A stretch of DNA of 64,000 bases from Oikopleura dioica (Eukaryota > Animalia > Chordata), in assembly GCA_907165135.1 (NCBI GenBank), contig OU015566.1, positions 10,416,001-10,480,000 on the forward strand. The letters are read 5' to 3'. Positions 7,244 to 52,109 of this stretch are shown piece by piece. The position numbers and the translations under genes are program-made. Numbering within the stretch: the stretch's first letter is position 1; every line of letters begins with the position of its first letter. The notes beneath the pieces were generated by a model. That model did no database searches. It saw only the letters and a list, made by a program, of their open reading frames with translations, and was not told the origin of the DNA.

Positions 7244-10200
7244 TTATTTCTGAAACTGTTCTTCGAGCGACTTCAGGAGAAGAATCGTATTTCCTCGGCG
7301 AATTCGCTTGAAAAAGAGGTTAAATTAAGGCTCAGTTCGAAAAAAGGGGTTCTTACATCTCTGGTCATTGACTGGTAGACAACTGGTTTCTTTTCGATGG
7401 ATTGAGAGTTAGAACGTTCATGTTTACCTTCTAGCTTCTTCAGTATTGATGGAAAACAGGTTAAATTTCTACTCTTGACTTCAGGGGTAATTTTGGTATA
7501 AATAATATCCGATCACGTTCCTTCAACGATTCATATCGTTCAACCCGACGGGCGAGATCGTTAGGGTCAGCCTTTGGAATCATCTCTCGGAGAATTCGAT
7601 ACTAAAAGTGCGCTTAAGACACGACAGCCGCTTATTTCAACTTTTTCCAACGAAAAGGGAGTCGTTGGAAAAATTTGTTTACCTGACTGAGTGTCCGAGT
7701 AGCTTCGCGATCGATTCGCTGGATGTTTTCACGTAGTCGAACGATCTCACCTTCGTAAATATCCTTTTCATTTTGCATTCTGTCCAACTTATCGCTCAAG
7801 TTCTTAAAAATATGATGAAGAAGATCTCGGGCATCTTACTTTCCGGTCTTCTTCAAGCTCGGAGATGAGATTATTCTGCACTTGAAAGTGCCTTTTTGTT
7901 TGAGAAATTTCTTCTCGTTTGAAGATCTTTGATTTTTCCTCTTCGTCGGCTACGATCTTCAAAAAGGATAGAGTAGATTCTAACGGTAATTCTAGATTTC
8001 TAAGACAATCCCCTCCTTGAGCCGCTCCACCTGAGGAGACGGAGGCGCCTCCATCATCACTGATAAGAGCTAAAACAACGTGATAATTATTATGTCTAAG
8101 TTCCGAAAGAGTAGGAAAAACTCTTATCATCCCTTTCGCGCTACCTTATAATTCTGGATTAAGTCAACCACTCGTTTCGCTTCGGAAGAATTCTTCGCAG
8201 TGAGGCTCTTCTCCCGCCCGCTCCTAAATCTTGTTGTAATTACAGATTTCATGATCGTCGCTAGAGACCGAAGTTTAATTGTTATTTTCTTGTCGACTTG
8301 CGCGGCTGAGCGAATCTCCGCCCATCGGAAGCTGGGATTGATGACTAAGTTCGTAGGGACTAGGTTCGTGGGACTAGGTTCGTAGGTGGTTATGCCAAAG
8401 TATGCAAGATGGGGTATGGTTTCCTTTCTATAAGGAACAATGTGGTGCGACTAGGTTCGTGGGACTAGGTTCGTAGGGGTGCTAGGTTCGTGGGTTTTGA
8501 AAATGATATTTTCTATAAGTATTATAAAAATTATAAATTTTTTTATAAGGAACAATTGAGTGCGACTAGGTTCGTGGGACTAGGTTCGTGAGTTTTGAAA
8601 TTTTTTTATAAGGAACAATTGAGTGCGACTAGGTTCGTGGGACTAGGTTCGTGAGTTTTGAAATTTTTTCATAAGGAACAATTGAGTGCGACTAGGTTCG
8701 TGGGACTAGGTTCGTGGGTTTTGAAATTTTTTATAAGAAAAAGGAGGGTGGGACTAGGTTCGTGGGACTAGGTTCGTGGGTTTTGAAATTTTTTTATAAG
8801 GAAAAGGAGGGTGCGACTAGGTTCGTGGGACTAGGTTCGTGGGTTTTGAAATTTTTTTATAAGGAAAAGGGGGTGCGACTAGGTTCGTGGGACTAGGTTC
8901 GTGAAGACTAGGTTCGTGAAGACTAGGTTCGTGAAGACTAGGTTCGTGGGACTAGGTTCGTGAAGATTAGGTTCGTGAAGACTAGGTTCGTGAGACTAGG
9001 TTCGTGGGACTAAGTTCGTGGGTTTTGAAATTTTTTTTTATAAGGAACAATTGAGTGCGAATAGGTTCGTGGGACTAGGTTCGTGGGTTGTAAAATTGGG
9101 TAAAGTTGAATGGTAAAAAAATGACTTCCCCACCCCCCACCCCCCCCCCCAAAATAAGCCGCTAGGCTCTTTAACTGAATTTCTATGTTAGCGCTGAATA
9201 ACAATGGTTGCCTTAGAAGAGTTGGTGATAACTATAACGGAAATATTTAGCAAGATAATTTTTTGAAACACGATTCTAGTCCCACGAACCTAGTCGCACT
9301 ACACTTTTCCTTATAAAAAAATTTCAAAACCCACGAACCTAGTCCCACGAACCTAGTCGCACCCCACTTTTCCTTATAAAAAATTTCAAAACCCACGAAC
9401 TTAGTCCCACGAACCTAGTCGCCCCCTCCTTTTCCTTATTAAAAAAATTCAAAACCCACGAACCTAGTCCCACGAACCTAGTCGCACATAATTTCTCCTT
9501 ATAGAATAAAAATAATTACCAATTAAAAACTCACGAACCTAGTCCCACGAACCTAGTCGCACATATTTTTTCCTTATAGAATAAAAATTCTAACCAATCA
9601 AAAACCCCCGAACCTATATTTAGATAACAATATTATAATATATGATCATATATTTACAATACATATTTATAAATATATATATACTTATAAATAGCACTTA
9701 ATCATTATAAATAAAAATATACATATAAAATCAAAAACTCACGAACCTAGTCCCACGAACCACGTTTTCCAGCCAGCCACCCACGAACCTAGTCCCACGA
9801 ACCTAGTCCCCACGAACTTAGTCATCCCACACCGGAAGCTCTCCTCATCCTTGAAATCAGCTGTGCTCAGCGTTATCGAGCTCGGGCTGACGCTAAGTAA
9901 TTTGTGGGGCTCAAACTTGGTGCCGATTTCAAAGAGCGCAGTTCCGTATCCACGCACATCACGTTCTGCTGTTTTCAAGTAAAACATCATCGCGTCTTCT
10001 CTTTATTTCGGGCTCATTTCCGTGGTGCGAAAGAAAATCAAATTAATTTATCTGAACTTTATTCAGCCCGGAACTGAGCATAGTCCCGCGTTCTTTATGC
10101 ATCTTCTTGACTTTTTCTTCCAAGATCGATTTTGGAAACCCAGTCGAGTTGAGAAAGCTCTCCGGAAAAAGCTCCTCGATTTTCAAATAGCGATCTTAAT

Positions 10201-10807
10201 TACCTTTTTTATTCGAAAAAGCTACTCTCTTACCAAGGAAAGAGTCATGAATCTCCGGTAAAAATGGACCGAATCGCTCTTGAGCTTGATATCCCGCTAG
10301 AGAGACAAGCGAGTCAACATCAGCATCATAGAATCCTGATAAAACCTTTGCCTTCGTATGCAAGTAGAAGAGACGAACAGTGATATCTTGAATTAGATCT
10401 GTTTTATGTTCTAAAATAACTTCTTGAAAGAAAAACTGAATGATGACGTAACATGTCCTTCAACCCTCAGCGGGTAAATTTTCACATCAAAGCTCAATTC
10501 GACGGGTTCCGTATTGAAGGGCACTTGAAGACCGAGTTTCTTCTTGTTCTTGACCCACACTTTGTGCCCATCAAAATCAGTACCCGAAAGTCCAAACCAC
10601 CAAGTTTCCTCTACGCCTAATGCGGCAACCACTTCATCGAATATTTGCTGGCCTGTTACAGCGTAAGGAACGGCAATTTCAAATCTTGTGACGGCGGTTT
10701 CTACTGCGATTACTACAGAGGTCTTCTGCAACTTTTAAAAACCTTTGAGAGTCTTAAATGCTTCAGTATCATACCTGGGCTTTTCTCTTAGTCTGCAAGC
10801 ATTCCAT
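7244..10807 (-). CDS. ERM/merlin-like FERM protein (FERM, coiled coil, ERM-like C-terminal tail), interrupted by a Foldback-like insertion
   Basis: FERM-N: VTGQQIFDEVVAALGVEETWWFGL. FERM-M: DLIQDITVRLFYLHTK, AGYQAQERFG, DAMMFYLK...GYG. FERM-C: EESF|RWAEIRSAAQVDKKITIK, joined across 8334-9832 and comparable to ERM FPWSEIRNISFNDKKFVIK. A coiled coil follows (7804-8130), then the C-terminal RIRRGNT motif, comparable to QIRQGNT. Confidence 0.8.
8334..9832. mobile_element. Non-autonomous Foldback-like DNA element, 1499 bp, with long modular inverted arms and 8-bp TSD CGGAAGCT
   Basis: The direct repeat CGGAAGCT occurs at 8326-8333 and 9833-9840. About 50 bp of near-perfect terminal inverted repeat follow the outermost 6 nt (GATGACTAAGTTCGT.GGGACTAGGTTCGTGGGACTAGGTTCGT.GGTGG). 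The left arm (to about 9090) has about 28 copies of the GACTAGGTTCGTG motif and the right arm (from about 9276) about 15 inverted copies, often as 58-60-bp units. No transposase ORF is present. Confidence 0.9.
9128..9150 (-). repeat. G-tract (potential G-quadruplex) in the non-palindromic centre of the Foldback element
   Basis: The plus strand reads CCCCACCCCCCACCCCCCCCCCC, so the G-runs are on the FERM gene's sense strand. Confidence 0.55.
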
Positions 10808-11006
10808 GATCTATTTCTAATGCTCTGTCAAGACAAAAATGATGCGCGATTCCATGTGAACGGGAGTTTTAAGTAGTTTCATTAATTTTGTTATTTTTGG
10901 CGAAGGGTTTATTATTTTTCGTCAGAAAAGTAGCAAAGTGGCAGAAATCAAACAGCGGAGGGTAGTATTTACAGTATTTTGACGATGTGATAGGTAAGAG
11001 GATAAA

Positions 11007-49664: not shown

Positions 49665-50330
49665 GCCCTCAACAAAATTTAGGCTGAATCTTTTTTCTCA
49701 AAAGTCAAGTCCACATTTTCTCTCCTGATATTTATTTATTGGATTATATACAGTTTATACCTTGCTAGTTTCAGTTTTCTGCCCTGAGTTTCCCTCCACA
49801 ACCGTTCGAAAAAAATACATGTTATACACTCTCAAACTCGCTTTTGTCTACTTTTTTTTGCACAACCAGGATCAAAGACATCGTCAATTACGAAGCATAA
49901 ACCGCATCTGCAGCACTTCAAGAAAATAGCCGAGCTTTGTTTTAGGAAAGGGAATATTTCAGCGCAGGAAGATATCGTCAGAACTTTTCCATTGGGTGGA
50001 AAAAATATTAATTTCACGAAATTGCAAAATCATTTCTTCGTTAATTTTTTAAAAATCTGACTGGATGTCGTGATAGAGTAGGTCAAGTTCTATATACTCA
50101 AAGAAAAAAATCAAAATCGAAAATTTTTTTTTTGCCGTCTAGAGGACATTGAAGTAAATTTCTGCTGACAGCGATTGTGCAAAAAGTACCCATTAGGGAC
50201 TCCTATTTTTCGACGGAAATATTTTCTAGAGAGTCTGAACTAGGGCGCCAGCTATTTTCTTGTCCATTCTGATTAGTTTATCACCGGTTTATCAGCAATC
50301 AAAGTTAGGTGAAAATTTCGCTGTGGCGAT

Positions 50331-50476
50331 GAGCGCGGCGGTGACTAAGCGGCGTGGTGGCGCTGTTGCCCACCCTACCCTGTTCCTCGAATCGAAATCG
50401 CTTGAATGAGATTTTCACTCGTGCCTGGCTAGGGTGCGCCACAGCGTCACCGTGCCGCATTGTCATTGCCGCGCTC
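50331..50476 (+). other. Long GC-rich inverted repeat/hairpin (36-bp core stem)
   Basis: 50331-50366 pairs with 50441-50476 by 29 Watson-Crick pairs, 5 G-U pairs and 2 mismatches. The stem extends about 14 bp further with mismatches. Confidence 0.75.
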
Positions 50477-52109
50477 CCCGTCTCATCACGATTTTCGTCT
50501 GACTTTGATCGCCGCCCTCTTCACAGCTACTGTTATGCTGCCATTATTTCTTTATATAAACTGTTTCCGGAAGTTATGCCTGCTTGCGGGTATAGCTTGC
50601 CACTCACTTTCAAAACTGCATCCAATAAAATACCAAAAAAAAAATAAGAGAAGGATCGCGTAATCAAAACGAAATAAAAAATAGCCGGCGTCTTACTTCA
50701 GACGCTCAAGAATATATTTCCGTCAAAAAATATGCCGGTCCAATGAATACTTTTTACGCTAGAGCCGTCAGTAGAAATGTACTTCAATTGCCGTTAGACA
50801 GCTTTAGGACTTTTAAATTTCAGATTTTTTCCTCGGAGAATATAAGACTTGACGGGTTTTATTAACACGTCTAGTCAAAGTTTGAAAATATTTAGAGAGA
50901 AAAGATTTTGTAATTTCGTTAAATTTATATTTTTTCCACCCATTCGCTTTATGGCACTCCTTTTGACTATGAAAAATTTCCCTCGCAGCAGGCTTCAATA
51001 TAAATCGAGCTTTTTGCAACATGACCTAGCCATCAGGTCAAACCAGGATCGTCTAGTTCTGACTTCAACGCCCCTGTCAACCCCACCCCTCGACCTCTTC
51101 AACAAACTCCCGAATTCTTACATCTAGCGAAATTCACACATCATTGCCATAATATTTATTTATTTCACGATAATCTACAATCCTAGCGCTACGATCTTAG
51201 GTTACTGTACCCGTTTTGTGCCTTTCATACCTTTCAGCTTTATACAAATCTTCTATTTATTCAAAACCAGGTTCGTTTTTGAGTCCTAATAAACTTTTTA
51301 TCTAAATCATGTGTCGTTGTTCAAATATTTTTGCAGGTATTCTGCTGAATCAAGCAACACTACTCTCTTCCTTGATTTCAACTCTTGAGGAAGTCTGTGA
51401 GTCAGCTCAAGGACACGTTCTCGCTAAGCTCTCTTTTGTCCAAAATGGCACGATCATTACTGGGAACAACTCATTTCGCCTAAAATAATAAAATCCACCA
51501 TTGTTCCTACCTTTTCTCCATGAGGTCATTACTTTCCTATTCAAATCTCTCGTGGAAAATCCACAAGCTGTTTTGCCCCCGATAGACAGCTCAAACAGCC
51601 AGATCATAACTGGCCAAAGAAACTTGCAAGGTTACGAAATTTCTGATACAAAATCAGATTTGGCGCTCCTTGTCCAGCGCGTTAAAATTATCTGCAAATC
51701 GCAAATCTCGGACTAAGAGAAACTAAAAAGTGAACGACTCTACTCCCTTATTGCGTAAGAGGACATTTCCGGTTTGTTTAATTAAATAACGTCTATGTTG
51801 ATTGCCGTTAATTGACTTTGATCCGTCGAGAGAAATATGGTGTTGGAGAATTCCAAGTACGTAATTGTCAAGTGCGCTAAAGGCTAGAATTATTACATTA
51901 TTGAAGTAGCATAATCTTGCATGTCATTTGCTTCTTATAATAATAATAATTATAATGAATTGCTAAAATACCACTTGATCGCCAACAACAATGATGGTCT
52001 TTTCTGACGTTTACTCAGAAACAATTATAAATTTATAAGCACCTGCAATTTTCATCTTTGCACGCTATATTTTATTATACATTAATGACAGCATTCTAGC
52101 TCCGTTTAC

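Follow-up and report, generated by a model that had tools for sequence, protein, structure and literature searches.

The Okinawan larvacean Oikopleura dioica carries, in a 64-kb stretch of its genome (contig OU015566.1 of assembly GCA_907165135.1), a 1.5-kb foldback-like transposon that lies within a coding exon of a conserved, ERM/merlin-like cell-cortex gene for a FERM-domain protein. The whole 64-kb stretch is referred to below as the window, and all coordinates are positions in it. The insertion is real, young and polymorphic in the species. Its end, together with the duplicated target next to it, offers a GT-AG pair in frame with the gene, and the element is a candidate for productive splicing as a newborn intron, a reading to which we assign a probability of about 0.45. 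Most ancestral introns have been replaced in O. dioica, which raises the question of how new ones arise; the present locus pairs an insertion allele from a laboratory lineage with a wild empty allele in a strongly constrained gene. Splicing of the element would mean that a chordate can turn a large transposon into an intron in a single step; failing that, the locus would merely add to the young deleterious insertions of a genome very densely packed with genes.

A recent insertion in a conserved exon

The insert comprises 1499 bp (8334-9832) and sits between exact 8-bp direct repeats. Taking it out together with one copy of the repeat restores the reading frame as ...DFKDEESF/RWAEIRSAAQVDKKITIK (here and below, a slash marks a junction), and the insertion point falls within a conserved F-x-W-x-E-I strand of the C-terminal FERM lobe (FERM-C). 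A sequence-only reading of this DNA, which preceded the present analysis, had proposed both the flanking target-site duplication and the landing of the element in a coding exon whose FERM-C frame excision would restore; both proposals stand.

That reading had also suggested looking for the empty site in other haplotypes, and four independent wild contigs supply it, each with a single copy of the duplication. Three of them (L001, L002 and L003, two from Tara Oceans samples) are contigs of marine metagenomes in ENA. They were reached through a search of protein representatives with exon 1 of the host gene, which returned only a 112-aa genomic open reading frame (ORF) and no full-length protein. 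These contigs are 96-97.5% identical to the window; their alignment stops at 9833 and restarts at 8333, and the overlap is exactly 8 bases, that is, one copy of the duplication. The fourth is a 942-nt contig from a marine metagenome run, X31, which joins 9833 to 8333/8325 with the same skip of 1507 bases. In more diverged lineages (80-86% identical in the split exon) the exon is likewise uninterrupted and reads DEES[F/I]RWAEIR; one of these, L005, retains the neighbouring amino-acid permease gene.

The occupied site, in turn, is found in X25, a DNA run that bears the same species label. Its Logan short-read contigs (7510-8363 and 9805-10900) pass from unique flank into the element and cross both flank-element junctions with zero mismatches. 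They enter the element by 30 and 28 nt, just below the 31-nt bridging rule, and end inside it where 31-mers turn repetitive. The joint of the empty site has a depth of 0 in this run. X25 may be the same individual as the assembled genome. Because empty sites occur in the wild and X25 holds the junctions without an empty allele, the insertion is regarded as real, young and polymorphic, and it is apparently the sole allele in the X25 sample, judging from contig topology rather than from reads. That a repeat block was instead misplaced in the Nanopore assembly has a negligible probability. The element is indeed a long internal repeat within which short-read contigs break, but X25 contigs hold both junctions free of mismatches, and the perfect 8-bp duplication, together with four other haplotypes that hold the exact empty site, marks the event as a transposition; the assembly artefact that the earlier reading had allowed for is contradicted on both counts.

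The exons of the host gene encode the N-terminal, middle and C-terminal FERM lobes, followed by a coiled-coil tail, and the proteins most like it beyond O. dioica belong to the ERM/merlin group (about 35-45% identity). By its substitution pattern the gene is under strong purifying selection, and it is otherwise intact. All 12 conserved coding blocks recognized by comparison with L005 are open in the window allele, and the ratio of nonsynonymous to synonymous divergence (dN/dS) is 0.03 against L001, 0.14 against L002 and 0.05 against L003; against L005 it is 0.04, with dS saturated. Since the gene is so strongly constrained, a null as the sole allele would be unexpected.

Architecture of the foldback element

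Structurally the insert is of the foldback type: its long inverted arms consist of tandem subrepeats and flank a unique centre. A 13-nt unit, GACTAGGTTCGTG, occurs in 39 copies (with at most one mismatch), all of them within the insert, against a chance expectation of 0.03; 26 copies lie on the forward strand (8358-9085) and 13 on the reverse strand (9283-9823). The subrepeats are laid out as units of 14 or 15 nt grouped in 63-nt modules. Arm 1 also has a run of 15-nt units at 8877-9020, and an AT-rich block at about 9600-9735 interrupts arm 2. The two arms measure approximately 740 and 555 bp and are 87-93% complementary. In the RNA of the gene, arm 2 becomes the 5' arm and reads as the 13-nt unit given above, while arm 1 becomes the 3' arm and reads CACGAACCTAGTC.

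The terminal inverted repeats (TIRs) match each other from position 7 inward and diverge in the outer 6 nt, and the terminus by which related elements may be recognized is GGGAWTGWTGACTAAGTTCGT. In the predicted fold the RNA forms a single hairpin of -731 kcal/mol that leaves just the 6 outermost nucleotides at either end unpaired. The sequence-only reading had described a modular Foldback-type element whose TIRs differ mainly in their outermost 6 nt, and this description is borne out by the inverted subrepeat arms, the low-copy centre, the single-hairpin fold and the start of the match at position 7. The ORFs in the insert are short and repeat-derived, with no long ORF and no transposase ORF among them, and for this reason we call the element non-autonomous. 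The 8-bp duplication fits a transposase of the hAT, MULE or P superfamily; the GGG... termini are a weak hint to the superfamily.

On the gene strand, the centre of the element (9125-9150) holds a G-run of about 25 nt (G11 T G6 T G4), which might form a G-quadruplex at the loop of the hairpin.

A candidate intron from transposon and target

On the gene strand the insert opens with GTGTGG at 9832 and closes with ...AATCCC directly before AGCTTCCG. The interval from the GT at 9832 to the AG at 8332 measures 1501 nt; its removal leaves six additional nucleotides and no stop codon, and the product reads EESFRFRWAEIR. The predicted spliced junction is ...AGCTTCCG/CTTCCGATGG, that is, ...GAGAGCTTCCG/CTTCCGATGGGC, with 9833 joined to 8331, and it would add Phe-Arg only. 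This pair, with its length, its six extra bases from the duplication and its preserved frame, had been named beforehand by the sequence-only reading and is present in the DNA as described.

In a simplified view, the events can be put as follows. A non-autonomous foldback transposon of the cut-and-paste type entered the FERM-C exon very recently, in the Okinawa lineage, duplicating 8 bp of target. The whole element would then leave the pre-mRNA as one intron of approximately 1.5 kb, so that the allele stays usable. The donor would be the terminal GT of the element (9832) and the acceptor the AG that opens the duplicated target (8332), and the foldback stem would juxtapose the two, with some 12 unpaired nucleotides between them. 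Six bases of the duplication would be added to the mRNA, encoding Phe-Arg inside the F-R-W-A-E-I strand. Such an intron would be an accidental newborn, permitted by a permissive spliceosome, and no selected property of the transposon would be needed. Insertion, duplication and polymorphism enter this account as observations, and removal from the pre-mRNA as what we infer. Clues that support the interpretation of the element as a candidate intron include its apparent status as the only X25 allele of a constrained gene, canonical boundaries, the permissive spliceosome of the species and an annotated intron.

The surroundings are those of a short-intron host, as the earlier reading had it. Introns of the host gene measure 37-81 nt (donors GTAAGA, GTCTCT, GTAGCG, GTCTTA and GTAAAC), and the genome-wide median in O. 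dioica is 49 nt (PMC8008620). About 11-12% of introns in the species are non-canonical, its spliceosome is permissive and 76% of its introns occupy new positions (PMC4122922). Because the host gene's own donors are very loose, GTGTGG and CCCAG do not appear out of range as a donor and an acceptor for this gene. A splice-site weight matrix from the introns of the window was dropped, as the candidate sets consisted mostly of false positives, and the introns of the host gene were compared instead.

Evidence from annotation

The deposited annotation was made with AUGUSTUS and RNA-seq hints on the OKI2018_I69 assembly, which represents a single male with approximately 3.6% heterozygosity (PMC8008620). 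It divides the one FERM gene into two models, with the break within the region 10001-10073. The element is annotated as intronic, since the 3' model of 271 aa spans it. When models with one intron across the element were tested, with or without the next intron, 248 GT-AG models gave exactly 271 aa. The model with 9832-8332 covers the most conserved sequence (791/813 bases), and the runners-up use 9830-8345 or 9817-8332. Product length, the sole basis of this comparison, suggests that the annotation uses the 9832-8332 pair. Of the reconstructions of the 5' model that retain the conserved blocks and match its length of 207 aa, a single one has three introns that are all of ordinary size (55, 47 and 39 nt, bounded by GC-AG, GA-AG and GT-AG, respectively). 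AUGUSTUS predicts GC-AG and GA-AG introns only with RNA hints, and this locus was therefore probably covered by RNA-seq in the annotation.

Splicing or disruption

Several arguments weigh against splicing, and a number of them speak for a plain gene-disrupting insertion, in which the element stays in the transcript, or leaves it only aberrantly through cryptic sites in the arms or by skipping of the downstream half-exon, so that the allele is null or hypomorphic. We consider such disruption a serious contender, at somewhat less than even odds. Translation that continued into the element would end at a stop after 27 codons. With one gene per 3.7 kb (PMC8008620), the genome is so dense that new insertions will often strike exons by chance. 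None of the four wild haplotypes or of the diverged lineages sampled carries the element, which counts in favour of disruption. Disruption would, however, leave unexplained why X25 carries no empty allele despite the strong constraint on the gene, and why the annotation pipeline places an intron over the element. A disruptive allele could persist if it were very young, if the gene were dispensable in culture, or if drift had raised its frequency in a small population of founders or of laboratory animals. The two points that tell for splicing have their own limits: the zygosity of X25 is read from contig topology and not from reads, and the annotation at the element may be ab initio, in which case such a predictor would pick the same intron without RNA.

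The splice sites themselves invite caution. Among the pairs formed by 10 GT and 4 AG within 70 nt of the ends of the element, 14 of the 40 are in frame and free of stops, which is the chance level of one third. Whether a given pair keeps the frame is set by the element with its 8-bp duplication alone and not by the codon phase of the landing site, and the in-frame outcome thus loses the special standing that the sequence-only reading had given it. The donor GT is part of an outer GTGT seen at this terminus alone. At its opposite terminus this copy starts GGGATTGATGAC, and a second family member, on ENA contig L004, has a terminus that starts GGGAATGTTGAC; both lack the GT. One splice site from the element and the other from the duplication is therefore a correct description of this copy, with GT missing at two other termini, and the suggestion that the element is built for intron making finds no support.

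Size and structure add to these doubts. The candidate intron is about 30 times the usual length, and the two added residues lie in a conserved strand. The predicted fold pairs all but the last 6 nt before the AG, although the fold in vivo may differ and helicases may act on it; if it held, the branch site and the pyrimidine region would be buried in an RNA stem of approximately 700 bp, within the -731 kcal/mol hairpin, as disruption would have it.

Transcript and protein searches yielded no evidence of splicing. Two bulk RNA runs with the species label, X4 and X5, yielded 8 and 1 partial reads, respectively, upon comparison with window positions 7300-10900, and nearly all of these reads are 90-95% alike. 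By this divergence X4 and X5 evidently derive from another cryptic lineage, and because they do, they say nothing on splicing. A run search for the host gene listed no RNA run as holding it. The spliced ORF was not found in protein searches with the empty-site exon, an ORF of the element and a 340-aa padded alignment; these searches returned genomic ORFs with an uninterrupted exon, one other copy of the element and generic ERM proteins. An exact look-up of the read-through ORF gave no record.

As a more general observation, a cryptic lineage other than the Okinawan one may be the source of RNA labelled O. dioica, which is then unfit for Okinawa-specific alleles.

An abundant family of foldback elements

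The element belongs to an abundant family, as follows from three lines of evidence. The word depth of the arms reaches about 200 times that of single-copy sequence in X25 and about 100 times in X31, the top arm word having a depth of 13540 against roughly 60 for single-copy sequence. In the short-read data, flanks other than those of the host gene join the element at exactly 8334. Finally, L004 carries a member that is 80-87% similar and sits in AT-rich, non-coding-looking DNA. A unit search through the 64 kb found no further copies in the window, and JGI metagenome contigs scanned with the double arm unit and with the terminus gave 0 matches each.

The flank of the copy on L004 (L004:1-367) contains, also in AT-rich DNA, a short inverted repeat, CCCTTACCGGTC ... 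GGCCGGTAAGGG, possibly another small miniature inverted-repeat transposable element (MITE).

Every arm unit reads AG/GTTCGT where it stands in the 5' arm and CCTAG/ where it stands in the 3' arm. As CTAG is palindromic, a donor-like 5' arm and an acceptor-like 3' arm arise in either orientation of insertion. This property, the high repetition of the arms and the agreement with an introner model in which the element supplies one site and the duplication the other (PMC11282704) are compatible with a dedicated introner family, whose foldbacks with GACTAGGTTCGTG arms would be adapted to create introns and, across the genome, survive preferentially in exons with the GT end first. We rate such a family as quite improbable: the window holds a single copy, the only other copy recovered lies outside recognizable coding DNA and has no terminal GT, and the two JGI scans added none.

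An unlikely, if somewhat less remote, generalization of the splicing account is that foldbacks and other hairpin-forming DNA transposons in coding exons are routinely spliced out by the permissive spliceosome of Okinawan O. dioica, with the stem juxtaposing their ends. If this were true, presence/absence polymorphisms would be introns caught at birth, the route would explain much of the extreme intron turnover of the species, and the 14-nt arm unit, with its AG/GT donor and CTAG/ acceptor, would serve in either orientation.

Comparison with known systems

The element shares with the Foldback (FB) elements of Drosophila long inverted arms of tandem subrepeats, a non-repeated centre and, in most copies of the latter, the lack of a transposase. 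FB elements make 9-bp duplications, whereas the element described here made one of 8 bp, has no sequence similarity to them and has no known autonomous partner. The likeness is structural and implies no common ancestry. A literature search found no paper connecting Oikopleura with foldback elements. For O. dioica itself, Denoeud et al. reportedly proposed in 2010 that new introns derive from transposons, in cases that are said to be fixed and supported by expressed sequence tags; species and route are the same, and the present locus differs in its presence/absence polymorphism. Transposon insertion is also listed among the sources of intron gain in Oikopleura, on indirect evidence (PMC3443670).

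Akin to our candidate, the introners of Micromonas and Aureococcus (Huff, Zilberman & Roy 2016; reviewed in PMC11282704) are non-autonomous DNA transposons with TIRs and a target duplication; they take one splice site from the end of the element and find the other in the duplicated target, and extra bases of the duplication are kept in the mRNA. According to the same source, they are short and number hundreds to thousands of spliced copies. In contrast, the O. dioica element is known here as a single copy of 1.5 kb, its arms are long and modular, the other termini seen do not share its terminal GT, and it is a candidate intron only.

The MITE-derived introns of Fritillaria borealis (Henriet et al. 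2019) come from another larvacean with a compact genome. As outlined in PMC11282704 and PMC13326754, inverted-repeat transposons there occupy species-specific intron positions, and the underlying idea is the same: a permissive spliceosome neutralises insertions in exons. The introns of Fritillaria are described there as short and fixed, in most cases with AG-AC or AG-AT borders, and their splicing has been demonstrated, whereas the O. dioica candidate is long, GT-AG and polymorphic, and is known from sequence alone. The nonconventional introns of euglenids also display base pairing of their ends, border repeats that resemble duplications and a suspected MITE origin; they differ in their non-canonical borders and in another pathway of excision (PMC11282704). 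The locus thus falls into an established category, in which the insertion of a transposon may have given rise to an intron, and departs from the known cases in its size, its modular foldback arms and its presence/absence polymorphism.

Feature coordinates and the remainder of the window

The coordinates of the features discussed above are collected in Table 1.

Table 1. Transposon insertion, candidate splice sites and host gene in the 64-kb window of O. dioica (slashes mark exon-intron boundaries)
Feature	Position	Strand	Description or evidence
Host gene, divergent ERM/merlin-like FERM-domain gene, ~12 exons	7244..10807	-	Homology and annotation
5' annotation model	10807..10043	-	207 aa, FERM_N + FERM_M
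3' annotation model	9990..7244	-	271 aa, spans the element
Upstream half of split exon	9833..10000	-	REDAMMFYLK...DFKDEESF
Downstream half of split exon	8269..8331	-	(F)RWAEIRSAAQVDKKITIKL; ends at donor CG/GTCTCT
Foldback-like non-autonomous DNA transposon	8334..9832	(-), orientation of host gene	Arms, subrepeats, absence in 4 other haplotypes
Target-site duplication, copy 1	8326-8333		CGGAAGCT on +, AGCTTCCG on gene (minus) strand; direct repeat and empty-site contigs
Target-site duplication, copy 2	9833-9840		CGGAAGCT on +; final 8 bases of upstream half-exon
Arm 1	8358..9097	+	~9 modules of 63 nt, two 14-nt units each
Central low-copy spacer	9098..9268	.	G-run on gene strand; X25 word depth ~3x single copy
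Arm 2	9269..9823	-	Inverse copies of the arm 1 module type
Candidate 5' splice site GT	9831..9832	-	CCG/GTGTGG, opening dinucleotide of the element on the gene strand
Candidate 3' splice site AG	8332..8333	-	AATCCCAG/CTT, first two bases of the duplication

Two introns in the 5' part of the host gene appear to be non-canonical: a GC-AG intron of 55 nt (10726-10780, minus strand) after the first small exon, and a GA-AG intron of 47 nt (10457-10411, minus strand) between FERM_N and FERM_M. Together they form the only sensibly sized set that reproduces the annotated 207-aa product. For the intron at 10001-10073 (minus strand), which leads from ...ERGTML to REDAMM..., no canonical boundaries preserve the conserved Arg. 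Boundaries of TT-AG, GT-AA or AG-AA yield an identical mRNA, and a GC-AG alternative gives SSG.

A photolyase-like ORF neighbours the locus, and its 90% cluster includes CBY38333.1 (Oikopleura dioica). Elsewhere in the window, at 49993-50942, lies a second, unrelated element of approximately 950 bp with 120-nt TIRs that are 77% complementary. Its termini read GGGTGGAAAAAATATT... and ...AATATTTTTTCCACCC, a 3-bp ATT duplication may flank it, and its centre holds a GC-rich palindromic block.

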